39,636 nucleotides of DNA, from NCBI GenBank assembly GCA_965644295.1, contig CBFFRP010000063.1, positions 1 to 39,636 of the forward strand. Direction: 5' to 3'. Made by a program: the position numbers and the translations under genes. This document shows positions 719-37,144 of the stretch, in pieces (the first letter of the stretch is position 1; each line of letters starts with the position of its first letter). This stretch comes from Paraphysomonas bandaiensis. Lineage: Eukaryota > Protista > Chrysophyceae. The notes under the pieces were generated by a model, which worked only from the letters and a program-made list of their open reading frames with translations, was not told where the DNA came from and ran no database searches.

Positions 719-1486
719 GGGACTTAAATCAAGTATTAGTTAGGTACCCACCCGGACCCCACCCTGCTCTACCTAAGTACGCGCTCAGAATGGGACACAT
801 ACCATTACTATACAAGTGTCTAATTCTCTACCACGATGAGTGCAGTAGCTGATTTTTATTGACAGAAGTAGTGTACATCATCGAAGTATTGACTAATTAC
901 GAGCATAACAAAACGGCATACTATTATGGAATATCATTACACTCCGTCAGGCCCTCCTCCCAAGTACGATGTACGAGTCCTTGTTTTTCAAGCAGCCAGA
1001 ACTGATAGAGCGTTTACAATTTACAATTCCCATCAGTCTAACTTCTTTGATATTTTTGCAGTTTTGATTCATAATAACTGAAACCTTTGATTAAAATGGC
1101 ATTTTCTGAATGCAGTAATATACAATCATAATGAGGTAGATATTTCATGAAGTGTATAATAAGTATTGAAATATCACATGAATGAAATCAAAGAACATGT
1201 TTGGTTGTCCTTTCTACTATATGTAGATTCAGCATATATATATGATGCAATAACTGCGAACTGTTAGGATACATAGCACAGACAGGCTACCAATTGACTC
1301 TTTCATAAATAGGGTAGGGGGTAGGTTATTGCTCACGTAGCCCACCATCATAAATATAGCCATATTAAAAATAAATGCATATTATGTAGTTATTTTCGTT
1401 TTCTTTGTACTTTTAGTTGTTCGAAACTACAAAATCTTAATCCAGCGAAACTACACCACCTCAATATCCGTTGTCGTCACAGCATA

Positions 1487-3742
1487 TTAAATACGAGTGA
1501 CAATATTCTCCCACAAACCAATCCACCACTCACCGGGCTCTACAATGCGATTCTGCTCCCGCCAACGTGTTATGCAATGCCTGAGGAAGTCATGAGGTAT
1601 GATATCATTTATACGGATAATATTGTGGCAAAGCGGACAGGGACCTTCATGGCGATTAGCAAAATAGTGAATAATAGCATCGCGTTCAAAAGTACATCCA
1701 TACTTATCCATCACAGGATCGTTCATTATTTCCAATGTCAGCGGACAAACGAAGTCAACAGGCACACGATCTCTATTGAGATAGAACCCATCTTGATCGG
1801 GAAGGCGTTGAAGTGTGTGAATCAATCCGGTAATGATAGACAAAGTATTTTGATTCAATACTTGAACAGGCTGGGTGTGGCGCAGAATCGCTGCTTGCAA
1901 TGAGTCTACTTCCCTCTGCAGGTTGCCGCGATACAAACACTGACAACACAGCAGACGAGTCACCTGATTATAAATTTCAACATCATTTGGACCTGTCTGT
2001 CTTGCTCCATATACGCTCTGATAAGTGAAATCGGTGCGAATCTGATCGGCGAGAGTCGCAACATCGAACGCATGTCGCATTATTTCAGTTGTGCGGTGCT
2101 GCCAGCGGTCAACATCGATGCGAAGGCTGTTTGCGAATCCTATTGGTTGCTCTTGCCACTGACTCTCTAGTTGGCGAACTTCGTTACTAAATGTAGCGAA
2201 GTGCCCCATCAGATTTCGGATTTCTCTATCCTTAGCTCGAACCCACGCGCTGCTTATATCAGTGTTGATATTAATGTATTGGCGCGCTTGGCCCAACGAA
2301 ACAAATATTCCTCTGCGGACGGTGTCCATAGTAGCTTCCCAAGTCTTCCAATGAATATTACCCCAATTACCAGTGCCACGAATATGATGATACAATTGGG
2401 AAAAGTTATCAGGATTGGAAAACGTGCTAGCGTAATCATTCATGAGTGTATCAATCGCTGCGCGAATGTTTCGGATCAGGTCATCCAAATTGACCTGCGG
2501 GAAATTAGGTGGAGGATTTCGCAAGTTTTTTAGTTCACTTAGCATGCCGATGACTTCAGTCATCGCGTCCTCCATAGCATTTAAAGTTTCACCCTGCGTT
2601 GTGCCAAGGTATCTCAACCTGTTGCGCCAGTAATCCATGCCGAATCGATCTTCCGCACTTCTTGAAACATTCGATACGAATTTGACTGGTATGCGCACTT
2701 CTCTACGAACATCGCCCGCGTCATTCTTACACAAGACTTTAATGATATGGTTTCTAGCAGTTGCTTCCATCTCTTCGAAGTCCAGATCTGCTGGTGTACG
2801 GGGACCTTCGCCACAGTCATCGTCCGTGCCCAACAGAACATCGGCATGCGTACATACAACAGAAACTTTTTTCATGCGCGATGATGTCGCACACAGCTCT
2901 CGAAAAGCCTGTTGTTCTTGTTTCTCTTTCAGAAATCTACTTGTCCGATCCGTGAACCAAATCTGCTGCCAAGAATCCACAGCCTCAAGGGCTCGCTGGG
3001 ACTTCATATCCACCGCATCAAAGAGACCGGGAGAATCCACCACTATCACATTGCTGGGAAGGTGTTCAAAGTTTCCTTCGATGCGAATGAAATCCACAGT
3101 CATGGCCTGCCATTGATCGGGTGGCGCATTGTCCTCAGGTAGATGAGAATAGATCGTCAGGGCCTCTCGTAACTCCTTCATGGAGTCTCGCTCAAGCACT
3201 AGTGGCTGGCGCCCAATGTTCTGTAAGAGTACACGGTTTTCTTCGTTTGGAGTTAGTGGAGTGGGATTCGCATAGCTGAGGTCGTTACTGAAGCAGTGCC
3301 TTATCAGAGTCATTATAGCTTCGAGTCTGCTATTTCCTTCGACTGACCGATTCCCCTTCAGCATTATCGCCACATATTCAAGGCGATCCTCCATAGTTTG
3401 GGTTGATATGAAATACACCGTTGCTTTGTATGTCTTCATGTCTGGCCGAGAGACAATCTCACTCACCACTGAAGTGGATGACTCTGCCAGTGCACCCGCT
3501 GTAACAACAGTCTCTTGAAGTAACTGATTGATGAATCGCGATTTACCCACTCCTGTGCCGCCATAGAGAGCAACTTTTGTTGGATTTAAGTTAGTTAAAA
3601 TCGTATCGCATCTGTTGATCACGTCACTGATATGGGGCCGAACATCAGCCGCTGTGTCTTCACTCGTTAGTATCTTCTGAAGACACTCAATAATCATACG
3701 GCATTTCGCCTGAACATTTGCTCGTCTAACATCATCCGCCAT
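1487..3742 (-). CDS. Dynamin-like GTPase (SLIP-GC/NUGGC type) fused to a C-terminal U-box domain; intronless, ~751 aa from MADDVRR
   Basis: G1 GGTGVGKS, G2 STS, G3 DSPG, G4-like THAD. SLIP-GC-like motifs YKATVYFIS and HWKTWEAT..RRGIF. U-box DFVCPLTLEIMNDPV..GCTFERDAI..CPLC..LRHCITRW. The first 61 codons of the listed ORF look like UTR. Confidence 0.85.
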   Translation of the reverse strand: MADDVRRANVQAKCRMIIECLQKILTSEDTAADVRPHISDVINRCDTILTNLNPTKVALYGGTGVGKSRFINQLLQETVVTAGALAESSTSVVSEIVSRPDMKTYKATVYFISTQTMEDRLEYVAIMLKGNRSVEGNSRLEAIMTLIRHCFSNDLSYANPTPLTPNEENRVLLQNIGRQPLVLERDSMKELREALTIYSHLPEDNAPPDQWQAMTVDFIRIEGNFEHLPSNVIVVDSPGLFDAVDMKSQRALEAVDSWQQIWFTDRTSRFLKEKQEQQAFRELCATSSRMKKVSVVCTHADVLLGTDDDCGEGPRTPADLDFEEMEATARNHIIKVLCKNDAGDVRREVRIPVKFVSNVSRSAEDRFGMDYWRNRLRYLGTTQGETLNAMEDAMTEVIGMLSELKNLRNPPPNFPQVNLDDLIRNIRAAIDTLMNDYASTFSNPDNFSQLYHHIRGTGNWGNIHWKTWEATMDTVRRGIFVSLGQARQYININTDISSAWVRAKDREIRNLMGHFATFSNEVRQLESQWQEQPIGFANSLRIDVDRWQHRTTEIMRHAFDVATLADQIRTDFTYQSVYGARQTGPNDVEIYNQVTRLLCCQCLYRGNLQREVDSLQAAILRHTQPVQVLNQNTLSIITGLIHTLQRLPDQDGFYLNRDRVPVDFVCPLTLEIMNDPVMDKYGCTFERDAIIHYFANRHEGPCPLCHNIIRINDIIPHDFLRHCITRWREQNRIVEPGEWWIGLWENIVTRI

Positions 3743-4161
3743 GTGTGTAACTTGTGGTGTTGTTGTGATGCTCTGGGTGTATGATAATATAATGAGATCG
3801 TGTAGATATGAATATACAGAGAGAAGACACGCAACATCAGCATGAATAAGTGGTGGAGGATGATTGTGTTGCCCCACTAGTAGAATATTCGAAAAGATGT
3901 AGGCGTCTGGTCTACTTGAATACATGCATCTGTAGAGTTTCTAAAGCAGCATCTTTTTCCAACTATGGACAAAACAATCCCAACATGCATCTACATATGA
4001 ACACACAGGAGCGGGCGGTATACACCGCTGGACATGGACATGTAGATGTATACGTACCTCAATAATACACGTACAGTCACACACGTTTTTAACAAAAAAA
4101 AACTACCCACAAATCCTACCTTTTCTAATTTATTTGGACAAACTACAGCATACACAGGTAC

Positions 4162-4550
4162 TGTATGTATGTATGTATGTATGTATGTATGTATGTATGT
4201 ATGTATGTATGTATGTATGTATGTATGTATGTATGTATGTATGTATGTATGTATGTATGTATGTATGTATGTATGTATGTATGTATGTATGTATGTATGT
4301 ATGTATGTATGTATGTATGTATGTATGTATGTATGTATGTATGTATGTATGTATGTATGTATGTATGTATGTATGTATGTATGTATGTATGTATGTATGT
4401 ATGTATGTATGTATGCATGTATGTATGTATGTATGTATGTATGTATGTATGTATGTATGTATGTATGTATGTATGTATGTATGTATGTATGTATGTATGT
4501 ATGTATGTATGTATGTATGTATGTATGTATGTATGTATGTATGTATGTAT
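4162..4550. repeat. (ATGT)n microsatellite, ~97 units
   Basis: Near-perfect tetranucleotide array with a single ATGC variant. Confidence 0.98.
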
Positions 4551-4641: not shown

Positions 4642-6071
4642 ATGTATATATTACGACTTCGAGTGGCGCTATTCCTTGCACTCCTGTCGTACATCGGCAG
4701 TGCATCTGACCACTCTGTCAGCGAGGGGTCGGGTCTGCACGTGTCTTTCACAGGGTATGTATGTCTGTCCGTTCGTTCCTCTCTAGCGGCGTATGCTTAG
4801 TGTGATATCAGGTGGCGGAATTCTCCCCAATCATATGGTATTGTGTGCATGAAGTTGCTTCTCGCCCTTCACAGGTATCACTATCATGCTTATGTGTCAC
4901 GGGCTCAGTCTGTTGCCAGGCGACAAGGCGAGACGATGAGGCTGAGCTTCTTCGATGCTCCCAATTATGGAGCTATGTCTAGAAAGAACGATATATCATT
5001 GGAGTCTATATTCTCTGATGATGACATTGAAACCATTAGAAGTATTCCTCGTCGAGAGAAGGATGATCCAGTAGATGTGGAGTTACGGTTTACATACCCA
5101 CATGATATACGCCCACCTGTTTGGCCACACACAATTTTATTTGTATTCGTGACGGCGGAGTTTTACGTACATAAGCCAATTCAGAATTTGATTATGACCG
5201 AAAAGCCCTGGTTTATCATTATGCCGTCATTCTGGTCAGCTCGCATCATGACTGACTTCGGGGGAGTGCCTCTGAGTAAAATATTCTTATTACCGCATGG
5301 GTACGATAAGCGCGTAATATACCCAATTCCTCTGCGTAGTTTGGGGTGCCAGAGCCTTCGCGAGGAATTAGGTGTGCCTATGGAGGGTATATTACTTCTC
5401 AACGTGGGGGCAGGTACACAAAATAAAAACGTGGAGCTGCTGATAGAGGTTTTTGCCAAACTTAGTGAGGACTATCCCAGCTCAGCGCTGGTTGTGAAGA
5501 CTATGACTGATTTATATTCCTCAGCTATGAATATTCAGGATGCTGTCATGCAAAGTAGGAGTATGACATCCTCTGTGTTATGGTGAGGGTCTTGCTGTAC
5601 TATTCCCTGTATGATTACTTGTGAGGGTGTGTTCATAGTATTTGTAGGCTGGATGGCATTTACCCCGACGAGATTATGGGCACCATATACAGATGTGCAG
5701 ATGTGTACGTTAGTCCATATATGGCGGAGGGCTTCAATATTCCAGTACTTGAAAGCCTTGCTTCTGGAGTTCCAGTTGTTGTATCCCGAGGAGGTCCCAC
5801 TGACGAGTTCGTTTCATCAGAGAGCGGCTTATTTGTTGATACGACTATTTTACAGTACTTAGATGACGGCATGCCGGTGCGCTACCTACAAGTGAATGAG
5901 ACCTCATTAAAAGAAACCTTAAAGTTCGTAATGGATGATTTCTATTATGGAAACAAGGCTTGGCTGTCGAAGGCCAGAAAAGCCGCGGCTCCTTCTGTCG
6001 TTACCTACGAGTGGACTGAAATTGCGGGGAAGTTGCAAGGCTTTATCGATGTTGGGCTAGATATTGTTTGA
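4642..6071 (+). CDS. Glycosyltransferase family 4 (GT-B fold) with N-terminal signal peptide/anchor; 3 exons (introns 4755-4811, 5583-5647)
   Basis: Spliced product reads MYILRLRVALFLALLSYIG...FTG|WRNSPQSYGIV...SVLW|LDGIYP. Motifs PHGYD, NVGAGTQNKN and the GT4 E-x7-E motif ADVYVSPYMAEGFNIPVLE. Both GT..AG introns keep frame. Confidence 0.85.
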
Positions 6072-21392: not shown

Positions 21393-24300
21393 ATGGGTCA
21401 AGTGTTTGGGGTTCCCGATACGCAGCCTGATTTTGTTGCATTCGTCAACTGTAAGTCTGCATAATGTAAGTGTATGCATCGACTGATATATCATTTCGTA
21501 GTGCCTCGTGAAGCAATTGAAAGCATATGGATGTCTTTCAACTTGCATGGTGAAGGTTGGGGGCTTGATTGTGACCAACTGAAAGAAATATTCCTCGGTG
21601 CAAGCTATATGAAAGATACTATAGGTAGCTTCTTGATATATGTTACGGATTTTTCCTACTCTTATCGACCAATAGGGTTCCAGATGGAGGATATTATAAA
21701 GCTTTTCAAATGCTTCGACACAGATGAGAATAATTTGATTGATGCACTTGAGCTGCTCATCACTCTTGCTCTTGCATCCGGTAGACTCACACGTGCAAAA
21801 CTTAGTCACTTTGATTATTATGTGCAGGAATGGATACCATCGATAAGCTGTTGTTCTGTTTCAGTATGTATGACTTTGATCAATCTGGCGAATTAAGTAA
21901 AGATGAAGTCTCGTTGTTGCTTCGAACGGCAGTGTCTGGCATGGGAAAAATATGTCACTTTGCGTTACCATCTTCTGAAGACCTAGAAAAAACAACGGAC
22001 TTGATATTCAAGGACGCGGATCGATCAAATGACCACAAGCTTTCTATATATGAATTTCAAACTTATTGTTGCATACACCCTGTTGTATCTAGTTGGTTGC
22101 GGTGCTACTCGTCTTTAGTTACGTCTTATAAGTGCCCAGATGAGGGACTAGACGATCCCGATGTCTCCAACATGACTTTCACCTTTGCATCGAAAAAAAG
22201 TAAACTTGTTCGTGCAAGCAGCTTCAAATCGCTTGCCTCAGTACCAACAAGTGAGCGTCCGTGGTTTAATACCGCTGATTTAATGCTGCCTGAGGAGATT
22301 CCAACAGTACGCCCTGATCCTCCTGAAGATATTCTCGAACCTGTGTGGTTGCACGGCCAGCGGTGTTTCGATGCAAGAGGAATGGTACGTTATGGTGCAA
22401 AAGGAAACATATTGTTTGTAACATCCGCGATTGGAGTCAATATGTCGAAAGATCCCGAAAGTGGTCATTGGAATCAAAAATTCATGTTTGATCACGATGC
22501 CCCGCTGACATGTCTAGACGTCGATAACTCATTGAGAATTGTTGCGACCGCTGATCGTGTGGATGGGGCACTTGGAGGTAACCAAGGAGAGGCAAAAATT
22601 ATTTTTTGGGACTCGATATCTAACATCCAGATTGGGTCAATATCTGTCACGGGTTGCCGAGGGATTCGCTATATAGATTTCTCCCCGGATGCGAAATTCA
22701 TCATTTGCCTCTCAACCGACGAGCAGAATTTTCTTATGATGTATGAGGTCGCCACACTGAGAATGGTATACTCTACCCATTTGGGTTCTGCAAAGATCAT
22801 GGATGTGAAATTTACACACTCCGATAGCATATTTGCAGTCGCTGGTTCTGAAGGAATCGACTTTTTCACTGAGGAAGGTGGAAGTTACATGTCATCAAGC
22901 GGAATGAAGATTTACGAAAAGCGACCAGGTTTATTTCAAGCCGTGGGTAGAGATGCTGCCGGTGTCGTAGTATCATGTCTAAGTGAATTTGAGCGATCAG
23001 ATGAAATGGTCAGTGGTGATGTAAATGGAAATGTTTTATTTTGGAGAGGTAGAAATTGTCTACAGCTTCTGAAGGCTCACAAATGTGCTGTCACCTCTAT
23101 GGCCTACTCTCATAACTCAAAGAAACTTGTTTCCGGTGGGAGAGATGGAAAAATCAATATATATAAGGTTGTCGATGAGCGGAAAAGGCCCGGCACTGCT
23201 AATCGTCGCCGCAATTCATTTCAAGCCCAGCCACAGAACGTCGGACGTACTATTGAGGTCGTGACTAGCTTTGATATGACTAGAGTTGACGTAGTGTGTC
23301 CGGAGATCCGGTCAGTCTCTCTGTGGGAGGACGGGAAGAGAGTTCTTGTTAGTGCGATAAGTGGAGAGATTGTTGAAATGTCATGTGTAGGTGCGACTGG
23401 AGCCATATCTGTGACAGATGTGGAAGGCGATGATGGGGAAAAGGTTCTCCGCGTGGGGGATGATGTAAACGGCGAACCGCTCCTTCGGGCGCACTGGGAA
23501 AAGTTTAGCCAACCTTCCGTGTACGGGCTGTGTAAACTGGCAGCAGGAGGATTTCTGTCTTGCGGCTCGGATGGGATGATTCGTCAGTGGCAAACTGGAG
23601 ATGAAGTACAGCACAAGGAAATTAAGCACGTTGAAATGGGTTCTGGGCTGCGTTGTATTACAACTTCAGCATCAAATATCGCTGTTGGAATGGACGGATC
23701 GAGAAACCAGGAACTCAATGGAACTGTTAAGGTGTTGGGCCTAGAGGACTTCAAATCTGTGGCAGATTTAAAGGATGCGACAGATATGATTACTGCTGTG
23801 GCATTCTCGCCAGATGGGAATGCTCTTGCTGCTGCCTCAGCGGATACGAATGTGTATGTGTACACATCCGCAGATGGTCAGTGGACACTCAAAGGTGCTT
23901 GTACAGGGCATTGTGGTGGTGTCATGAACGTTGATTTTTCTGCGGATGGGCAATTCATCCGCTCTAGTGACAGGACAGAAGAGCTCATCGTGTGGGACGT
24001 TATTGTTAACTTTGGAGCTCAGGTAACTGACCCCGAGACACTAAAACCGGTTACTTGGGCGACAAACACTGTACCATTATGTTGGGATCTCAAGGGCGTT
24101 TTTGACAGCTTGCGTGAGGGCGAAACCGTTGAATGTGTTGACCGTATGCATCACCTTGCTGTGTTGGGACTGTCGTCTGGCGCCATGATACTCAGTCGTA
24201 TTCCTGCATCGGTGACTCATGATCACCGACGAGAGGAAGCACATTGTGGCCGAATCTCTTGCGTCTGTTTCATTGATGATGGTGCTCGTATGGTCACCGC

Positions 24301-27300
24301 TGGTGCAGAAGATGGACTTGTCCAAGTTTGGAAAGCAACGTATGATTTCGATGAACTTGAAGTGACGGAACCTGAAGAGAAAGGCGAAGAGGAAGAAGAA
24401 AATGAACCGGAGAAGAATACATATTATGACAGCGGTGATGATGAAGACTTAATGGAAGTTTCTGAAAGGCCTATGGGTTCTGATGCTGTGCTCTGTAGAA
24501 TTCGAAATAGTATGTTAACTGAAGAGAGAGCAGCGTCTGAGAAAGGTAGTGTCAAGGCTGAGAGTGTGAGCGGCAGGTCATCGAGTCAGAAATCAGTCAG
24601 TCAGAAAAGTGATGGTGGAGCTGATGAAAGCAAAGGCGGAGATGCTTCCGTGGACGAAGATGCGGGGCAAGAAGTTGTTGTTCCTAAAACACCACTTGAG
24701 CTCATCGAAGAGTTTGAGGCAGACCAATTTGTATACGACAAATCGAAATCTGTTGAAGCAAATTGGCTAGCTGCAAACCCATGGGCGAAGAAACTACAAG
24801 TGACCGAGGATAGCCTCAAAAGTACCCCCGCGGTCCCCCCTCCCCGAGCGGAAATTCAATTAGATTGGATATATGGTTTTTCTGGTCGAGGAACCCGCTC
24901 TTCTGTCCAATATTGCGCTGATGGAAATATTGCGTATCCTGTATCCACTGTTGCAGTGATTCTTAATAAAGTTAAAGGCGTTCAAACCCATTCAATGAAC
25001 CATTCTGATGAGATAACTTGTTTGGATGTGCATCAAGCCTCTGGTAAAGCTGCAACCGGCCAGCGGTCTACGGAATGCGTCTTTGTCTCCGTCTGGGCTA
25101 CAGATACAGGGAAATGTCTCAGACATTTAAATTGCGGAGCTGTAAATGCGGCTTCAGCTATTTGCTTTTCTCCCAGTGGTGAATATGTAGCGGTTGCCTG
25201 CCAAGATTTGACACATAGTATTATTATTTTTGATTGGACGAATAATGTACTGAAGTGTCGTGTACCTGGTGGTTCGACTAAGGTGTTGGGTCTCGTGTTC
25301 AGTGTTGCGACGTGCGATACGCATGGTACTCTGCGCCTAATGCAAGTTGGTCTCGGTCACTTTCATGTGCTCAAAATTAAGGGTAGGCAAATGTCGTCCA
25401 AGAGAGGGAAGTTCGGTGGTGCGAAACAAAACGTTCTTTGTGCTGCTGCCCTGCCACTTTCTACTAAAGAAGGGAATGAATTCGCTATAGGTTTGGAAGA
25501 TGGCTCCATTGGTGTCATTGCACGCGGCGAGAAAAACATCTCTAACTCAGTATCTATTCACTCTAAGTCTGTTACTGCTATGTGTGCTGTCAAGCTTACC
25601 GACGGAAATGAAGACGAGAATTGTACGTATAAGCTTGTCTCTGGTGGGGCAGACGGTATGATTAAGGTGTTGAATCAAGATTTGGAGCCACTTTCGGAGT
25701 ACAATGTGTACAAGGAAAGCTATGGTCTTTATATTATGGGCAAATGTAGAGGTATTAAGTCTCTTTGTGTGGACAAGTCATGTCGAAAGATTCTATATGG
25801 TACTGCAGGCGGTGAAGTTGCTGAGATTGATATAAATGACGGTAGCGATTTGAACGGTGCGCCCCTTGTAAGTAGCCACTGCCGTGATGAGCTACACGGT
25901 ATGGTTACTCATCCAATGAAGTTGGAAGCCGCCTCTGTCGGAGATGACAAGACTCTGCGTGTCTGGCATCTCGAGAAGAGAAAACTAATGGCAATGCTTG
26001 AGCTCCCAGATATAGCACGCACAGTGTGTTATTCTCCCACTGGTCAAATAATTGCAGTTGGACTTGGTGGACATGTTCACGGAGAAAACAGAGTGCCAAG
26101 GAAGTGCGATGGACACGTGGTGATTGTATCTTATATGCAAGGTTCGCTTCGTATCGTGCATGAAATATCTGACAGTCGAAAACCAATATCGTGTCTTGCA
26201 TTCAGTGCAGATGGGTCTGAATTATATGTCGGTTCTGAGGATGGCAAGGTGTATGTGTACAATATTCATGAGGATTTCAATAAAATTTTTGAATATGGCC
26301 AGCACACTGCTGGTATAACGGGGATTGATATATCTGAAGATGGAAAAATACTCTGTACATGTGATATGTTTAACAATGTGATATATTGGGACCAATCGGA
26401 TGAAGATAAAAGAGGTGAAATTCTAGATGAATCGAAGATTCGTAAGGTACTCCCTAAAACAAAATGGTTTGTAAGACAGAATGTTTTGGGTTTGGACTCC
26501 ATTGGAGTTCAAAAGGTTCCATTTGAAATGGGACACGCGCTATGCTTATCGGAATCTCGAGATCGCTCGTTGTTAGCAACTGGTGATTGCAACGGTGGAT
26601 TGTCATTGTTTCACAGCCCTTGCAAAAAGCCAAGTGCCCCTTTTACGGAAATGATTGGCCATTGTCCTGGAGGTATATCTCGTGTATCCTTTGCTACTAA
26701 AGACAAGTATATACTTACAGCTGGAAAGTATGATCGGTCTTTGTTTCAGTGGAGATTAGAGAAATCATCTGGTGATGAAGATGGAGAAGTACTGCCATCG
26801 AGACCCACAACTACCATGAAACTAATGGAAAAACTTGGAACGGACAAAGAACTGGATGCGATGACGGAAGTTACACCACTCAGTTTCAACAACGACTCGA
26901 TGTTAATTAATGGAGTTAATTTTGCGAAGGATAGTACTCCTGAGCTTCCGAAAGTCAAACCGCAAAGTTTGTCGGTGCTAGGTTTATCGTGTGCTTCATT
27001 TACGAAGCAGGTTACTGCGCTACCTGTAGGATACTACTGTGGGTCTGGCGATGTAATTACTTGTGCCGGATGTCTACCAGTAGCTATAAGCTCCAATCGA
27101 ACTATCCAAAGTCACTGGCAAGTTCCGAAGAACGAGTTTGGATATAATGAAGATATTGGTGTTATTGCAGTCAGCACTGATGGAAGGACAGTTGCTATGT
27201 GCGAGAAAGCTCCCGGACTGGTGAATCCGTTGAATTCTGCAGAAAATTTCCAAGGAAGACAATTTGTATTTAATGGATCGAATGGTATGCTACTGAGTGT

Positions 27301-29022
27301 TCTACCGGGTACGATTGGTGGAGGCGTTGTTTCCGCCACTTTTTCCCACGATTCCCATTCGTTAGCATGTGTAGGTTGTTGTGCTCATCATTCTTTTACA
27401 ATTTTTCATTCTGTGGAGGGTAACTGGAAAGACCCCGTTCGACTGTTTCATGGTCAAATTGACACAAACCCTGTAACAGTTGTGGTATCAATCATGCAGT
27501 CCCCAACAAACATGGAATTTCAGTACGCCACTGCTGGGCGAGGGCGATTGAGGCTTTGGAAAGTTCGCGGCCGTAACGCTGTGTCATCACCTTGTGATAT
27601 ATCTGGTCCTATGGAGGCGATAACGGCAATGGTGTCTGTTGGAGCTGGACAACTCATTACAGGTGATGCTTCTGGAACGGTCTCTTTGTGGGATGGAAAG
27701 TCTTGTCTAGAGACGATTTCGAAAGCTCATTCCCGTCGTGTTTCAGCTGTATGTTACTTCGAGTCTTCTCAAAGCAGAGGTGGTATTGTTGGGTTCATGA
27801 CAGCCTCTAACGACACAATAAAAATTTGGAATTTAAATATGGAAGTCTTGCAAGAATTTGCAGTGGTTGATGTTCTATTTCGTGTCAATAGAGTTGTAGA
27901 AAATACGTATGTTACTTCGATGTGCACTGACAGTGTATTTAAACGTCTTTTGATTACACTTTCGAATTCTCTTATCGCGGAAATATCTATTGATTCTGGT
28001 GCTGTAATGCTACTCACGGAGGGGCACACCAGTGGGAGTTTTGTTGCGATTGCTGCTCACCCGAAAGAACCTCGTATTCTTGTAACAGGAGGTTACGATG
28101 GTTGGTTGAAGTGCTGGGATATACGTAGTCAAGCAGCGTTAGAAGTTTTGAACGTGGGGGAGCCCATAAGTTCTATTGTATTTCGTGATGATGGGCAATC
28201 CTTTGCAATATCTCTCAATGACACTGTGACTATAATGGAATTTGATGTGTTTGCTGCTAGTAAGTTTAAGGTTATGCATAAAATATCTAAAGTTGGAAAA
28301 GGGAAAATTCCACTTCTGAGATATTCACCGGATGAATCTGTCCTTGCAGCTGGTAGTGCCGATGGTCATATTTATATTCTGGATGTGGATAATAAATACT
28401 CGAAGACAGGCAATTTGAAAGGGCATACTCGTGCTATTGAAGGATTCGACTTTTCTAAGTCTGGAAAGTACCTACGTTCATTTTCTCGTGATCCTGAGAA
28501 TGAAGCTGCAATTCGCACGCTTTTCCATGTTGTTGAAAAGGGTTCCACATCAACTTACGAATTGATTGAGCAACCGGATGACCTAGTCCCACTTACACGA
28601 GCTTCATGGAAAACCGTTTCATCTCCTGCTGCCCCCGAGGGCAGAGGTATGCGGGTATCGGAGAATCAGATTGCAGCTACCTCAATTCCGGTCATTGTTA
28701 CGAGCACGGCAGTTAGTGTGGATGGAGAGCTACTTGCAGTTGGGTACTCTGACGGAAATGTTAAATTATTTAGGTATGTGCACTATTGAATAGTAACAAC
28801 AATGTATTGATTTTGATGTACAGAAACCCTGCTTGTTCTGTGGATGCCCAGTCAGTTGATTTGATCGGACATGCTAAAGGAGGCGTTGCATGCAGTTTCA
28901 GTGCAGACGGAAAGTATTTGTACACTGCAGGCTCTATGGATGGGTCTGTTATTGTTTGGGACATGTATGGAGGAACAAAGAAAAAAGTAGTTATAGGTCG
29001 CTTGAGCTCATTCGACTTCTAA
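21393..29022 (+). CDS. EF-hand plus EML5/6-like (three HELP/WD40 modules) microtubule-associated protein, ~2,500 aa, about 5 exons
   Basis: Exon 1 reads MGQVFGVP. EF-hands DTDENNLIDALE, DFDQSGELSKDE and DRSNDHKLSIYE. HELP-like motifs WLHGQRCFDARG and LDWIYGFSGRG. Many WD40 repeats. One ~6.9-kb exon; last intron about 28774-28823. Confidence 0.88.
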
Positions 29023-32396: not shown

Positions 32397-33168
32397 ATGA
32401 GTGAGACAGATTCAGACAGGGAGGAAGCATTGCTTCAATAGTGAAGAGGAAGTGGCCGTATACGCCGACAGCCGGTTGTGTCTGTTAACTCCAATGCTGA
32501 TAATGTATCTGACTATAAGATGAAACGAACAAAAGCAGGAATGAAAGCAGCATACTAGAAAAAGGTTGGCCATATTGTAGCGTGGTGTATAACAGCGTAC
32601 CCTGAAGCTCTGATGATGATGAAAATTTGAAGATTCCATTCCCGAAAGACATCTCTCTTGAGTACTTCGGCCATCTGTTCACACCGGCTCACGAAGGAGC
32701 GAAAGAGGGAAGCTAAGGGCCCCAGATGACATTCCAGAAAGTGAACCTGACCCCTCTAGTAGATCCCACATTAAGGGATATAGAAGCCCTATTGTCTACT
32801 TATATACCTTAAGAAATATGAAGCTAGTCGTGGATGTAGTCTTAGACTTAGAACTAAGCCAGGCGATAGATGGCTATGAGAAAGACATCAATGAACTGAA
32901 GAAGGAAGGACTCATGAAACCAGAAGAGGGTAAAAGTCCGTTAAAAATGAATGGCTATAAAATTTTAGCGACGAATATGATGTTGATGGTTCCCTGTGCT
33001 ATTGCAGGCAGTTAGTCCTATATCTTGTTCATGTAGGCATATTTTGTACTGATGTGGAATATAATGAGTAGATCTGATTCAGTAGCTTGATTGATGTTTG
33101 AATATTTTGACTGGAGAGGTGATGCAACGCTTGTTCAAGAGCAAGGAGACACAAACTGGACAAAATAG
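32397..33168 (+). pseudogene. Decayed, 3'-truncated Crypton (CryptonS-like) tyrosine recombinase
   Basis: Reading through stops and frameshifts gives IKGYRSPIVYLY, EGKSPLKMNGYKILA, FVLMWNIMSRSDSV (first catalytic Arg) and FDWRGDATLV. The HxxR and catalytic Tyr region is absent. Confidence 0.75.
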
Positions 33169-33912
33169 ACTAGTAATGAAACATTCTCTAGTGCGCTGAA
33201 TATAATTGTGAATCATATCGTAAGTGTTCATAAGTTAAAGCATATGGATACAGTTTCGTACGGTAGCTTGTACAATGCAATCTGCAAGTTGAAATGTGTA
33301 TGGAATTGATAAATGTCACTTCTTTAAATTTAAGCAGTAGAAATCAAACTCTTGACAAACAGCTCTATAAGGCTGAAAAAAAACGGGGAGAGAGAGGAAA
33401 GGACAAGCCTTTTTCTACCCCATATGCCCCTCAAGGGGCCTCTTCTCTTCGAGTGTTTCCAATTACAACCTTCGGTTGTAATTCCTTCTCTTTGCTAATT
33501 TAACTTTATATATTATTAATAACTTTTAATTACTTTATATATTATTTATATTCTTAAATAAAATTAATTACTTTATATATTATTTATATTGTTATAATAA
33601 AAAGTAATATAGATAGTAAAGTAGATTTAATAAGTAGATTTAATAGTAGATATAGGGGGAGGGAAAAATTAAAATGAAAAATAATTTAAATTTGTAAAGG
33701 TTGTAAAACCCCGGGATTCTACCATAAAAACTACTTATTAAATCTACTTTGTTATCTATATGACTTTTTTATAATAATGTATAATGGCAATGCTTAAAGC
33801 TCTGGAATGTAGTTGTAGTGATATAATGGCGAAGCTTTAAGCAAAAACTCATAAAACCTTGAATTCTAATTTAAATATAGAATATAATAATGTAATGCTA
33901 TATTATATATAG

Positions 33913-35508
33913 ATGTCAATTTATACAAAGCCCAAAACAAGCAATAATGCCATTTTCAATGCAGAAAATCATAAACAGATTGAAACAGCAAGAGTAATAT
34001 TAAATATGGCGGAATATGCAAGATTAGACAATGCTAAATTTACAGCGAACGTTGAAATCTTGAATGGTAATAACTTAACCATAAACAATGAACCCCAAAC
34101 AGTTGCTTTCACAGATTCAAAAAATAATATGTTGTCAGATATGAATACAAGATTATTAAACCTCACTGGAAATGAAATACAAACATTAGACGGTATAAAT
34201 ACCAATGAAACTATACAATCACAATTGAACACATTGACAGAAAGTTTTAACGGTCTTGATGCTCTCCAAGATTTAGACTTAATTAATATACCGAATTTGC
34301 AGATGGATGTAGCAAACTTACAAGCCCAAGATATAACATTACAGAACAATATTGACACTAAACATGATATAATAGATGTAAATAATAAGTTGGATTCTTC
34401 ATTAGTGTATGATTCAACAGAATTAAACACAATGGATAATATAATAGTAAGTTTACAAGATCAAATAACTAATAATGACACTGATATAACAAACTTACAA
34501 AGTGACAAACACGATTTAATAGATGTAAATAATAAGTTGGATTCTTCATTAGTGTATGATTCAACAGAATTAAACACAATGGATAATATAATAGTAAGTT
34601 TACAAGATCAAATAACTAATAATGACACTGATATAACAAACTTACAAAGTGACAAACACGATTTAATAGATGTAAATAATAAGTTGGATTCTTCATTAGT
34701 GTATGATTCAACAGAATTAAACACAATGGATAATATTATTTCTAGTTTGAAGACTCAAATAATAAGCAATGACACAGACATAACAAACTTACAAAGTGAC
34801 AAACACGATTTAATAGATGTAAATAACAAGTTGGATTCTGGATTAGTTTATGACTCGACAGAATTAAACACAATGGATAATATTATTTCTAGTTTGAAGA
34901 CTCAAATAATAAGCAATGACACAGATATAACAAACTTACAAAGTGATAAACATGATATAATCGATGTAAACAATAAATTGGATTCTTCTTTAGTTTATGA
35001 CTCTACATTTACTGACACAATTGATAACTTGCTAAGTACAATAGACGGCAATATTACAACACTTGAAAATACAAAATTGAATTTAACAGGCGGAACAATT
35101 ACAGGAAATATAACAACTAAACAAATAAGCGAATCCATCAGCACAACATATACGTTTTCTTCAAATGTGTTGACATATAATTATAGCAATGGTTCAATCA
35201 TATATTTCAATGGTTTAACAAGTGATACAAATTTTGAACTTGATATAACGAATATTAATTCAAGTAACTTAACAAATACTTCTTTCACAGTGTCAGTTAT
35301 AATAGATACATCAAGTTATAAAGCACATATAAACACTTTAAAAGTTAATACAGTTTCAGAAACGTTGAATGTGTCAGGAGGACTCGCAAATGTTAATGTA
35401 GACGACGTGACAACATCAGGAGCAATATTACAAACAATAACAATAATATATACTAACTTAGGAACATCACCAACGAAAGTAATATCAAATATAGGATCAT
35501 ATTATTAA
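33913..35508 (+). CDS. Fibre-like viral structural protein with ~4.5 tandem 49-aa repeats
   Basis: N/D/T-rich 531-aa ORF. Repeat unit KHDLIDVNNKLDSSLVYDSTELNTMDNII..DTDITNLQSD. Tail-fibre-like KLNLTGGTITG followed by a beta-rich C-terminal domain. Confidence 0.75.
   Translation: MSIYTKPKTSNNAIFNAENHKQIETARVILNMAEYARLDNAKFTANVEILNGNNLTINNEPQTVAFTDSKNNMLSDMNTRLLNLTGNEIQTLDGINTNETIQSQLNTLTESFNGLDALQDLDLINIPNLQMDVANLQAQDITLQNNIDTKHDIIDVNNKLDSSLVYDSTELNTMDNIIVSLQDQITNNDTDITNLQSDKHDLIDVNNKLDSSLVYDSTELNTMDNIIVSLQDQITNNDTDITNLQSDKHDLIDVNNKLDSSLVYDSTELNTMDNIISSLKTQIISNDTDITNLQSDKHDLIDVNNKLDSGLVYDSTELNTMDNIISSLKTQIISNDTDITNLQSDKHDIIDVNNKLDSSLVYDSTFTDTIDNLLSTIDGNITTLENTKLNLTGGTITGNITTKQISESISTTYTFSSNVLTYNYSNGSIIYFNGLTSDTNFELDITNINSSNLTNTSFTVSVIIDTSSYKAHINTLKVNTVSETLNVSGGLANVNVDDVTTSGAILQTITIIYTNLGTSPTKVISNIGSYY
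34359..35030 (+). repeat. 147-bp coding tandem repeat, ~4.5 copies
   Basis: Period of 147 nt measured between successive gatgtaaataataag copies. Confidence 0.92.
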
Positions 35509-35556
35509 AAATATATAAAACAATTTAAAAAATATTATATATATATATTATATATC

Positions 35557-35724
35557 ATGCCTAGAGAAATTAAAAGAAAGTGCAAACATTGTGATAAAAC
35601 TATAAGAAGAATAAACAAAGATTGGGAGTCAAGAGAATATCATAAGAAATGTTATAAAGAGATTGAAGAGATGAAGTCAATGATTATGAATATGGAGAAA
35701 TATAAGAAAGTGTATAATTTATAA
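35557..35724 (+). CDS. Small CxxC...HxxC zinc-finger protein (55 aa), absent from the ORF track
   Basis: MPREIKRKCKHCDKTIRRINKDWESREYHKKCYKEIEE...; preceded by tattatatatc-ATG. Confidence 0.7.
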   Translation: MPREIKRKCKHCDKTIRRINKDWESREYHKKCYKEIEEMKSMIMNMEKYKKVYNL

Positions 35725-35787
35725 ATTTTGTTGTCATTATAGTTAGTTAGTATTATATATACATATGTATATGTAACGTTTCAAAAA

Positions 35788-36111
35788 TTAATAGCCTTGT
35801 TCAGGTTTAATATAAGTGCCGTGTTGGTCATCATATTCTTTTAATAGTTTTTTTCGTTTTTCATAAGCTTTAGTTTTTTCAAGTTGTTCACTTGGTAAGT
35901 TTCTATTAATAGGATTCTTATAATATATTTTTTGTCTTTCATCTAATAATTCAATACTTTTCAATTTCTTTTGTATATCCAAGTCTTTAATCAATGCTTT
36001 ATATTCATCTATTTTTTGATTCAGTTCATTAATTTCTCTTTGAACTTGTGGTTTTCTAGATTTAGAAATACTGTATAATTCATTTTTTAAACAAATAACA
36101 AAATCGCTCAT
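35788..36111 (-). CDS. Hypothetical viral coiled-coil protein (107 aa)
   Basis: K/E-rich ORF with AT-rich codons, preceded by tctattatatacag-ATG. Confidence 0.65.
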   Translation of the reverse strand: MSDFVICLKNELYSISKSRKPQVQREINELNQKIDEYKALIKDLDIQKKLKSIELLDERQKIYYKNPINRNLPSEQLEKTKAYEKRKKLLKEYDDQHGTYIKPEQGY

Positions 36112-36146
36112 CTGTATATAATAGATTTAGAAATTGTTTTATATAT

Positions 36147-36678
36147 TTATTTCCCGAATTTTTTACCAGGTTTTAAATATTTCAATTCATCTGTATTATG
36201 AGACTTCAAAAGATTATTAGTTCTTGAATTGAATACATGTGTTTTATTATCATTGGAATTGAAATGATTTAAAGATGATACAGGGTCATTATGTGTTTTA
36301 ATATCTATTTGATTGTCATTAGTTCTTCTTGTCATTTCTAAAGGAGATATTGCCTTATTAAATGTAATAACGTTTTTTGAATTCTTCCCTACTTCTTCTG
36401 CAACGATGCCACCTAAAGAATGCCCTAATGTGTGCATGTTTTCAGTTCCATATTTCTTTTCTGCTTTCTTTTGTATCTTTTTAGCATGCTTAAATCTATT
36501 TCCTCTATGTCCAAATAATAAGCCTGCATCAGTTAATACATCTTGTTTCATCTGCTGTTAAAGCACCACCTTTCATTTCATAATATAATGCTCTGCACAC
36601 AGGGTCTGATAAGGCCTCATTATACTTCATATTATTTTGTTCGCTATATTGTTTTACGTGTTGTATCCATTTTGACAT
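36147..36678 (-). pseudogene. Lipase (class 3-like alpha/beta hydrolase) of PLV/virophage type, apparently internally deleted and frameshifted
   Basis: The 3' part has TLGHSLGG, ITFN, DPVS and a C-terminal His. The 5' part (ATG at 36678, MSKWIQHVKQYS..KGGALTADE) is in another frame. The RGT-type segment expected before the lid is missing. Confidence 0.65.
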
Positions 36679-36959
36679 ATCAATACTATATATATTACAC
36701 ATATATAATAAAATGAAATAGTTTTATAATGCGATTAATAAAATTGGGAATATTCTTTGAATAATAACTTTAACTAGAATCTCAACAATCAACGATTTAA
36801 TGAGAGCCTTTAAGAAGCTTTCATCGTCATTGAAAAAAAAATTCTAAGTCTTGTTGCTAATCTTCTGAATATGTTACTTCTTTTAACTTTATACATTACA
36901 TTATTGATACTATGTAATAAATATGTTTCATCATTGTTAAAATATGGTTTCATTATTTC

Positions 36960-37144
36960 AGTTGAAGTGTAAACTTCGCTTCCGTAGTTTTCCTATCACA
37001 TACGCACTACGTATTATGAATGAATGGATAGTATGTCACATGCATGCATATCCATTCATTGTCATCACACATTGACATGTTTACATCAGTTGTCCTTAAT
37101 ATATAATATACCTTTTCTCCTCTAAAGTACTTCATACTTTAACT
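36960..37144 (+). repeat. 5' LTR, 185 bp, AGTT...AACT
   Basis: Identical by eye to 39456-39636 over 181 bp. Confidence 0.9.

Follow-up and report, generated by a model that had tools for sequence, protein, structure and literature searches.

A NUGGC/SLIP-GC-branch dynamin-like GTPase fused to a C-terminal U-box in the chrysophyte Paraphysomonas bandaiensis: diversifying paralogs and a plausible immune or conflict role

Cell-autonomous immunity draws repeatedly on two kinds of component, dynamin-like GTPases (Mx, GBP, bacterial DynA/LeoA) and RING/U-box ligases (TRIMs, PUBs). To our knowledge, RNF112 (ZNF179/neurolastin) is the only characterized protein that joins a dynamin-like GTPase and a RING/U-box ligase, and it is a neuronal housekeeping factor, which we take to have an N-terminal C3HC4 RING and a G domain of the GBP/atlastin branch. 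Here we analyze another such combination, encoded on the minus strand of a 39,636-nucleotide stretch of Paraphysomonas bandaiensis DNA (NCBI GenBank assembly GCA_965644295.1, contig CBFFRP010000063.1, positions 1 to 39,636 of the forward strand), referred to below as the window: a dynamin-like GTPase with a C-terminal U-box ubiquitin ligase (E3) domain. The excerpted text of PMC12012479 presents RNF112 as a dynamin-superfamily GTPase and RING-class E3 in one chain, whose G domain dimerizes in the transition state. Two further systems invite comparison. Duplication and diversifying selection focused on the stalk loop are named as hallmarks of Mx genes in the excerpt of PMC4687636, and NUGGC is a nuclear GTPase enhancing B-cell genome stability according to Richter et al. 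(2009 and 2012), as cited in the excerpt of PMC12107551.

The window ORF scan returned a single long minus-strand open reading frame (ORF) at 1487..3925(-), open for 812 codons. The methionine at 3742 (MADD/MTDD), from which a preliminary description of this DNA had started the protein, is common to all six paralogs found in the genome and gives a product of 751 aa. This product is predicted to be a single soluble chain in which a NUGGC/SLIP-GC-branch dynamin-like GTPase is followed by a C-terminal U-box E3 domain. The frame is unbroken, the G1 to G4 motifs fall in family-conserved columns and the Pfam U-box match is significant, in agreement with the intronless ORF, full GTPase motifs and terminal U-box of the preliminary description. 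No transmembrane-like segment was detected in the protein (highest 19-aa hydropathy, 1.19). The parts of the gene, with the evidence for each, are as follows.

1487..3742 (-): complete coding sequence, 751 codons plus the TAA stop (1487-1489); start conserved in six of six paralogs.
3587..3742 (-): two N-terminal helices, neck/bundle signaling element (BSE)-like, aa 1-52; ratio of nonsynonymous to synonymous divergence (dN/dS), model helices, and alignment with G-BSE constructs (dynamin, mini-mitofusin).
2783..3586 (-): G domain of dynamin type, aa 53-320, carrying a helical insert after switch I and before G3; Dynamin_N in 32 of 37 family members, and fold matches.
3539..3562 (-): G1 P-loop GGTGVGKS, aa 61-68; G61, G66 and K67 nearly invariant in the family.
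3473..3475 (-): G2/switch I threonine, T90; invariant alignment column, family motif TTAVPTEI.
3026..3037 (-): G3 DSPG, aa 236-239; D236, P238 and G239 nearly invariant.
2840..2851 (-): G4 variant THAD, aa 298-301; TYAD in three paralogs, TKLD in the nearest outside relative.
1793..2782 (-): helical stalk/trunk, aa 321-650, without a transmembrane segment; model, fold matches and hydropathy.
2249..2371 (-): central conserved motif W..H..T..A.M..R.G.F.S...N.DI, aa 458-498; common to DUF7605 proteins.
1925..2035 (-): main diversifying-selection hot spot, aa 570-606, made up of the loop 575-586 and flanking helix ends; indel in one paralog.
1547..1765 (-): U-box, aa 660-732; Pfam and solved PUB relatives.
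1490..1531 (-): helix at the C terminus bearing the WW..W motif found across the family, aa 738-751; kept in E3-less relatives.
1235..3991 (-): unit duplicated among the six copies, the ORF plus ~250 bp of 5' flank/untranslated region and ~250 bp of 3' flank; copy alignment.

At the codon that is Gln in the other five copies, the window copy has TAA, and it therefore lacks their acidic tail of 5 to 15 aa. When the window copy is read past this TAA (1487-1489), the downstream frame still resembles the paralogs' tail.

The same layout recurs well beyond this genome. A word-based protein search had one relative, P0001 (785 aa), among the matches listed; it is 25% identical to the window protein over 96% of the length (E = 2e-72) and combines a full-length Dynamin_N (2e-11) and a canonical TKLD G4 motif with a C3HC4 RING in place of the U-box. 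When 1.84 billion representatives were searched exhaustively with a profile, 4579 matches resulted, 195 of them at E <= 1e-10 and 19 at E <= 1e-30. Most of the weaker ones cover the U-box alone or the G domain alone; more than 20 are full-length proteins of ~730-830 aa with the layout of the window protein, and at least 26 distant clusters of ~750-800 aa share the GTPase-E3 architecture. Across a 37-member alignment, Pfam recognized Dynamin_N in 32 proteins, U-box in 13, zf-Nse in 15 (best 5.4e-11), RING models in 7-12 and DUF7605 in 7, these last being only the seven E3-less proteins of NUGGC/SLIP-GC architecture. A tree computed on the non-E3 columns united the E3-bearing proteins in one clade against the DUF7605 outgroup (SH-aLRT 100) and joined the window clade to P0001 (SH-aLRT 98). 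These comparisons extend the pairing of a SLIP-GC/NUGGC-type GTPase with a C-terminal E3 to a whole family, a distribution most simply explained by a single origin of the fusion. Within the family, P0013, P0015, P0021 and P0024 form a subclade in which the N terminus is extended by 200-280 aa and the E3 region is degenerate, and P0015 (L012:1473-5243, from an NCBI assembly) also has a C-terminal Ser/Thr-Tyr-like protein kinase, making a GTPase-(E3-like)-kinase chain.

The 20 family clusters whose names were looked up, drawn from Logan, ENA or JGI assemblies and one NCBI assembly, had no name, were called "hypothetical protein" or, in one case, bore an evident misannotation. A literature search found no description of Dynamin_N with a U-box or RING of this type, nor of DUF7605. 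By these sequence comparisons, the GTPase-E3 fusion in the NUGGC/SLIP-GC branch appears to be independent, ancient, widespread in environmental microbial eukaryotes and unannotated.

The GTPase module carries the dynamin-superfamily P-loop GxxxxGK[ST], switch I Thr and DxxG as GGTGVGKS, T90 and DSPG. Dynamin_N passes its cutoff in the 32 aligned relatives (best 2.8e-21; 44.6 bits for P0001), and P0001 is tied to the window protein by the homology given above. The G4 motif of the window protein is T-H-A-D, in which Thr and Asp are kept and Lys is lost, while P0001 and several other relatives have TKxD. The preliminary description had read THAD correctly; the DUF7605 relatives also carry GTHAD, so it is a trait of the clade and not a peculiarity of this gene. 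Because THAD keeps the guanine-specifying Asp and occurs in those relatives, guanine nucleotides are expected still to be used, perhaps with lower affinity.

A SLIP-GC-like middle region had likewise been claimed. Pfam DUF7605 was absent from the window protein by hmmscan, even at E up to 1; profile-profile comparison bore the claim out, as did the top match of the Atlas shape search described below. When 19 E3-bearing members were compared with the seven DUF7605 proteins in hhalign, they matched with 100% probability (E = 6.9e-44, 515 columns), query 8-550 aligning on template 5-627, a range that contains the first two thirds of DUF7605. The region covered takes in the N-terminal helix, G domain, stalk and the core motif W..HW.T..A..R.G.F.S...N.DI. 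The window protein thus lies outside Pfam DUF7605 as hmmscan draws it and is, on the profile-profile evidence, homologous to DUF7605 proteins. With NUGGC/SLIP-GC, a nuclear GTPase of germinal-center B cells, and other Dynamin_N/DUF7605 proteins it shares the N-terminal helix, a G domain with the same helical insert, a THAD-type G4, the stalk and the central motif. It differs from them in that NUGGC-type proteins have no E3 domain, whereas here the U-box and the WW..W helix come after a stretch in which the last third of DUF7605 has been replaced or has diverged.

The U-box is recognized by Pfam over positions 1-72 of the 73-position profile (aa 660-732; E = 3.7e-10, 40.2 bits against a cutoff of 21.4). 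Among solved sequence relatives, plant PUB U-boxes are best (1e-8 to 1e-6), against 1.5e-4 for Nse2. The alignment of the C-terminal 73 residues to PUB U-boxes runs from end to end (1e-8), with CP[IL][ST], DPV, G.T[FY]ER and the final CP conserved, and the putative E2 (ubiquitin-conjugating enzyme) contact positions CPL, DPV and final CP are invariant in all six paralogs. As judged from the sequence, zinc site 1 ligands C2, C5 and C6 are missing and the C-x-H of site 2 is replaced by Y-G-C, with the final CPLC remaining, so that some metal binding may persist. Plant PUB E3s differ in that their domain is joined to ARM, TPR or WD40 repeats, whereas here it is joined to a GTPase.

Relatives keep other stages of the same domain. 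P0001, P0007 and P0008 have a full C3HC4 RING; a common intermediate retains only C-x-H and C-x-x-C, that is, one zinc site in the SP-RING manner, as many family relatives share with Nse2/Mms21; and U-box-like forms occur in the window clade, P0016 and the fragments P0004, P0009 and P0018. Unlike PUB U-boxes and the Nse2 SP-RING, members of this single GTPase-E3 clade range from full RING through one-zinc to U-box-like states, and the family thereby offers a natural series in which to study RING/U-box interconversion. P0014 and P0022 have lost the RING/U-box wholly and kept the terminal WW..W helix, which suggests an E3-independent structural role for this helix, e.g., docking on the neck.

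The one-zinc intermediate accounts for the zf-Nse matches, and it also raises another possibility, that the protein is a SUMO ligase of the SP-RING (Nse2/PIAS) type, a nuclear GTPase SUMOylating chromatin or repair factors, which would fit the genome-stability role of NUGGC, described as nuclear and as enhancing B-cell genome stability in the excerpt of PMC12107551. The zf-Nse model does score marginally above its cutoff on the window protein (29.7 bits versus 27) and is found in 15 of the 37 relatives, and the family consensus retains the second zinc site alone, as SP-RINGs do. We nevertheless consider this reading very unlikely. The SP-RING C-x-H pair, present in many distant relatives, is missing in six of six paralogs; the U-box model outscores zf-Nse and is matched along its whole length; among solved structures, plant ubiquitin U-boxes match better than Nse2; and close relatives such as the fragment P0004 lose the last Cys too.

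The preliminary description had called for an AlphaFold model. The one computed from a shallow 7-sequence alignment (predicted local distance difference test [pLDDT], 48.7) was discarded and a model from the 37-sequence alignment was used instead (pLDDT 84.2; predicted template modeling score, 0.63). Residues 1-650 are confidently predicted to adopt a dynamin-like fold with a G domain, a helical neck/BSE and a stalk. Foldseek matches of this model were exclusively to the dynamin superfamily. The leaders, at ~1e-12, were the bacterial dynamin-like proteins (DLPs) 5owv, BDLP (2j68/2j69), SynDLP and IniA, followed by Drp1, mitofusin/Fzo1, MxB, dynamin, OPA1 and LeoA, with MxA also among the fold matches; for BDLP, DLP1/2, SynDLP, mitofusin, Drp1, MxB and dynamin, the Foldseek probability was 1.0 and E ranged from 1e-12 to 1e-7. 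VIA-align gave Z scores of 21.6 (5owv_B), 20.9 (SynDLP) and 20.3 (Fzo1) within a range of 21.6-18 that includes IniA and mitofusin, and it aligned G-domain plus BSE constructs (dynamin, Dlp1 and Vps1) and mini-mitofusin on model residues 1..651. The top row of the Atlas shape search was a chordate "nuclear GTPase SLIP-GC-like" cluster (TM 0.50, residues 1-644), and the Atlas feature search returned dynamin-family and SLIP-GC-like clusters. Judging from the alignment ranges, a neck/BSE packed on the G domain would be formed by the N-terminal helices together with the last stalk helix (631-646). The U-box starts ~14 residues past this helix, and its probable position is thus beside the G domain, not at the stalk tip.

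Across G domain, neck and trunk, the solved structures that match best are those of bacterial DLPs (Nostoc BDLP, Campylobacter DLP1/2, SynDLP, IniA and LeoA) and of mitofusin/Fzo1. If the nearest solved folds, which are those of membrane tethering and fusion proteins (Campylobacter DLP1/2, BDLP, SynDLP, mitofusin/Fzo1 and IniA), were also a guide to activity, the protein could be a housekeeping factor in membrane or organelle quality control, a mitofusin/BDLP-like remodeler that ubiquitinates itself or its partners on damaged or fusing membranes, with paralogs serving different compartments. RNF112 offers a precedent, being placed as a dynamin-superfamily E3 in endosome and mitochondrial biology in the excerpt of PMC12012479. 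The bacterial DLPs and mitofusin/Fzo1 bind membranes by paddles or transmembrane segments and have no E3, whereas no hydrophobic segment of transmembrane or paddle type is present in the window protein. Its copies form one recent clade with the nearest outside relative only 25% identical, and they diverged recently (synonymous divergence [dS], 0.04-0.18) with ~19% of sites at a dN/dS (omega) of ~3.7. A quality-control role of this kind is thus unlikely in our judgment. The lack of any meaningful name on all 20 of the looked-up relatives' clusters also speaks against it; with six diversifying paralogs, these are not the marks of the conserved, single-copy, annotated housekeeping family that the preliminary description had named as the outcome that would overturn its proposal.

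Nor is RNF112 itself a relative. It has a three-helix middle domain and is brain specific and single copy, whereas the window E3 is C-terminal, U-box-like and set on a BDLP/NUGGC-type scaffold. The top-ranked fold matches of the window protein are of BDLP, mitofusin and classical dynamin types, not GBP or atlastin. Because domain order and fold-match profile both differ, we regard the two as independent fusions.

The paralogs supply the second line of evidence. The 62.5-Mb assembly holds six intact copies, one each in the window and on C297, C475 and C410 and two on C379, with proteins 80-83% identical. All six belong to one recent clade in this genome. The C379 pair (G000:C379:138188-143580; L003/L005) lies head to head, 880 bp apart, shares an inverted copy of the 5' flank and is the youngest (dN 0.025, dS 0.035). 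Pairwise dN/dS (Nei-Gojobori) is 0.49-0.86 overall, falling to 0.06-0.16 in the N-terminal helices and around G3 and rising to 1.3-1.7 at alignment columns 561-620; the N-terminal helices are the most conserved part (0.12-0.16). Over three independent pairs the overall ratio is 0.66, below 1 (P = 2e-5). A pairwise window test found no region significantly above a dN/dS of 1, and the signal appears only with site-variable models.

Those models were fitted to the six sequences with our own implementation of the codon likelihood (F3x4, M0 branch lengths rescaled, naive rather than Bayes empirical Bayes posteriors). M0 gave a log likelihood (lnL) of -6237.48 with omega 0.85, M1a an lnL of -6155.33, and M2a an lnL of -6113.89 with 18.7% of sites at omega 3.7. 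The likelihood ratio test (LRT) statistic of M2a against M1a was 82.9 (P ~ 1e-18), and ten null data sets simulated under M1a gave values of at most 2.7. The 53 sites with posterior >0.8 cluster at aa 439-486 and 570-606. Tested segment by segment, each on its own tree, M2a against M1a gave P = 1e-4 for aa 1-320, 2e-4 for aa 321-500, 7e-8 for aa 501-650 and 0.62 for aa 651-751, the U-box and tail. The paralog count and diversifying-selection test called for at the outset thus returned six copies under positive selection that lies mostly in the stalk and not in the U-box; the G-domain core, N-terminal helices and U-box are constrained.

Stalk-focused selection could have a different cause. If the copies hetero-oligomerized like bacterial DLP1/DLP2, stalk sites might coevolve as interfaces between partners and not through target recognition. 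The best structural match, 5owv, is indeed a bacterial pair of dynamins that is obligate, two copies lie head to head on C379, and the stalk is generally the oligomerization surface in dynamins. However, an omega near 4 on a fifth of sites would be rare for interface coevolution, and the head-to-head pair is the most similar of all rather than a diverged heteropair, which together make partner specialization decidedly unlikely.

The gene is expressed and intronless. Contigs from the RNA libraries occur only within ~1435-3895; the flanks have no depth, the ORF contains no joint, and one contig (1732-1873) bridges the stalk/U-box junction. The libraries comprised a poly(A) metatranscriptome run together with two others that were guessed to be RNA, one of which was flagged "probably DNA". 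A DNA-like run also covers the flanks (900-1434 and 4003-4100). The RNA contigs are short and 90-99% identical and may come from paralogs or related strains, so they record presence in RNA libraries rather than one full-length transcript. A GT4/GT1-family glycosyltransferase gene at 4843-6071 (+) is made up of two frames split by an apparent GT..AG intron of ~92 nt (~5555-5646). This change of frame across a GT..AG gap, beside the unbroken frame of our gene, agrees with the claim of an intronless gene among intron-bearing neighbors.

The other claims about the setting fared less well. A repeat-rich surrounding holds for a near-perfect (TGTA)97 microsatellite at 4162-4550, ~170 bp upstream of the duplicated unit, which produces spurious long ORFs in several frames; the long terminal repeat (LTR) element and the polinton-like-virus fragment lie ~30 kb away. 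The six copies have diverse host neighbors (glycosyltransferase, LanC-like, VPS13, formin, mitochondrial carrier, kinase, DHFR-TS, actin-like and Myb genes) and mobile-element neighbors (a DDE transposase, a Copia reverse transcriptase and a D5-like primase fragment). Individually, a DDE_3 transposase ORF (L025:348-1388) lies within 10 kb of the C297 copy, a Copia-type polyprotein ORF (RVT_2, 1268 aa open; L029:2-3805) within 10 kb of the C475 copy, and a D5_N primase-like ORF fragment (L028:9129-9950) ~9 kb downstream of the C379 pair. Comparison of the window with the 10-kb flanks of the other five copies revealed no neighbors shared among the six loci, and two profile scans of IMG/VR, which used short peptide patterns only and have limited sensitivity, returned no relatives. 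Neither a defense island nor a mobile carrier was therefore seen, and the link to viruses in the preliminary description found no backing in these scans or in any consistent gene neighbor.

The same data bear on whether the family is selfish, virus derived or decaying, spread by retroposition, a mobile element or a virus, with its high dN/dS due to relaxed constraint. Several features lean that way: an intronless gene in an intron-bearing genome, a duplicated unit of about transcript length, transposon genes and the D5-like primase fragment within 10 kb of some copies, pairwise dN/dS of 0.5-0.86 overall, and the nonsense codon that removes the tail of the window copy. But stop-creating changes make up 3.85% of all point changes, and with ~110-180 changes per lineage 4-7 stops would be expected in each if evolution were neutral; all six ORFs are otherwise intact, whereas neutral decay would have broken them, and purifying selection is strong in the N-terminal helices and the G3 region. 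A pseudogene reading was ruled out on these two grounds. No terminal repeats or poly(A) tail were found at the ends of the duplicated unit, the 5' flank with the likely promoter was copied too, and neighbors differ at every locus, so we consider such a history highly improbable. Viral origin in particular is unsupported, given the two IMG/VR scans within their limited sensitivity, and defense island or mobile-element carriage was set aside, the flanks holding unrelated host genes and assorted transposon genes with nothing in common.

An immune or conflict role is plausible and, we infer, the best-supported single hypothesis. Paralog expansion with stalk-focused positive selection is the pattern of antiviral Mx, which raises the odds of such a role, and like MxA/MxB the window protein has a G domain, BSE and stalk together with duplication and diversifying selection focused on the stalk. 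Mx proteins differ in belonging to the classical dynamin branch and in having no E3 domain, and antiviral activity is demonstrated for Mx whereas we propose it for the window family by inference. We put at about an even chance the reading that the protein couples Mx-like recognition and assembly to a built-in TRIM-like E3 output and serves in genetic conflict. By analogy with the Mx stalk loop, the variable stalk surface would recognize a changing target, which could be a structure of viral or other parasitic origin or a marked membrane. GTP binding would then drive G-domain dimerization and assembly, as in other dynamin-superfamily proteins, and assembly would bring the neck-proximal U-boxes together. 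Clustered U-boxes might in turn recruit E2~ubiquitin and modify either the bound target or the assembly itself with ubiquitin, leading to degradation or signaling. GTP-licensed ubiquitination is proposed here from dynamin-superfamily and RING/U-box enzymology. A more specific version, offered tentatively as a possibility short of that, is a protist class of restriction factors that would pair Mx-type stalk-loop sensing with TRIM-type output, the six paralogs forming a small repertoire against viruses, endogenous virus-like elements or transposons and ubiquitination proceeding via GTP-driven assembly on the target.

Several observations weigh against this proposal. On the window protein alone, Pfam Dynamin_N scores 15.8 bits, under its cutoff of 27, so that relatives and structure are needed to settle the GTPase class; the missing G4 lysine may mean a different nucleotide affinity or specificity; and a complex prediction for two G domains (aa 50-325) with GTP scored 0.06, which gives no verdict on dimerization. 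On the ligase side, the residue after the last Cys varies: we take this position to be that of the allosteric "linchpin" Arg in RING E3s, and four copies have Arg, the window copy His and one copy Gly. According to the excerpt of PMC12012479, autoubiquitination of RNF112 is reported not to depend on the protein's dynamin-like properties. Gene conversion among paralogs, accounted for here only via the segment trees, can inflate the selection test, and positive selection among paralogs can come from subfunctionalization. The unshared neighborhoods and the IMG/VR scans count on the same side, as do PADLOC searches, which gave only noise-level matches (e.g., LeoA, E = 0.016). NCBIfam matches were also at noise level (e.g., DynA, 6e-6, for P0001).

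If the protein is a defense effector, it would be among the first candidate innate-immunity effectors for such algae, and it would offer a tractable handle on the function of the poorly understood NUGGC-type GTPases.

Two other regions of the window were recorded. A 2319-aa ORF at 21830-28789 (+) encodes many WD40 beta-propellers and matches the two EML (echinoderm microtubule-associated protein) propellers very strongly, at E = 1.7e-159 and 1.6e-90. Positions 33000-37000 form a sharply AT-rich block (GC content 0.26-0.29 versus ~0.40 elsewhere) containing a 531-aa ORF (33913-35508) with weak Pfam matches. Elsewhere in the genome, several silicon-transporter genes score above the Pfam cutoff.

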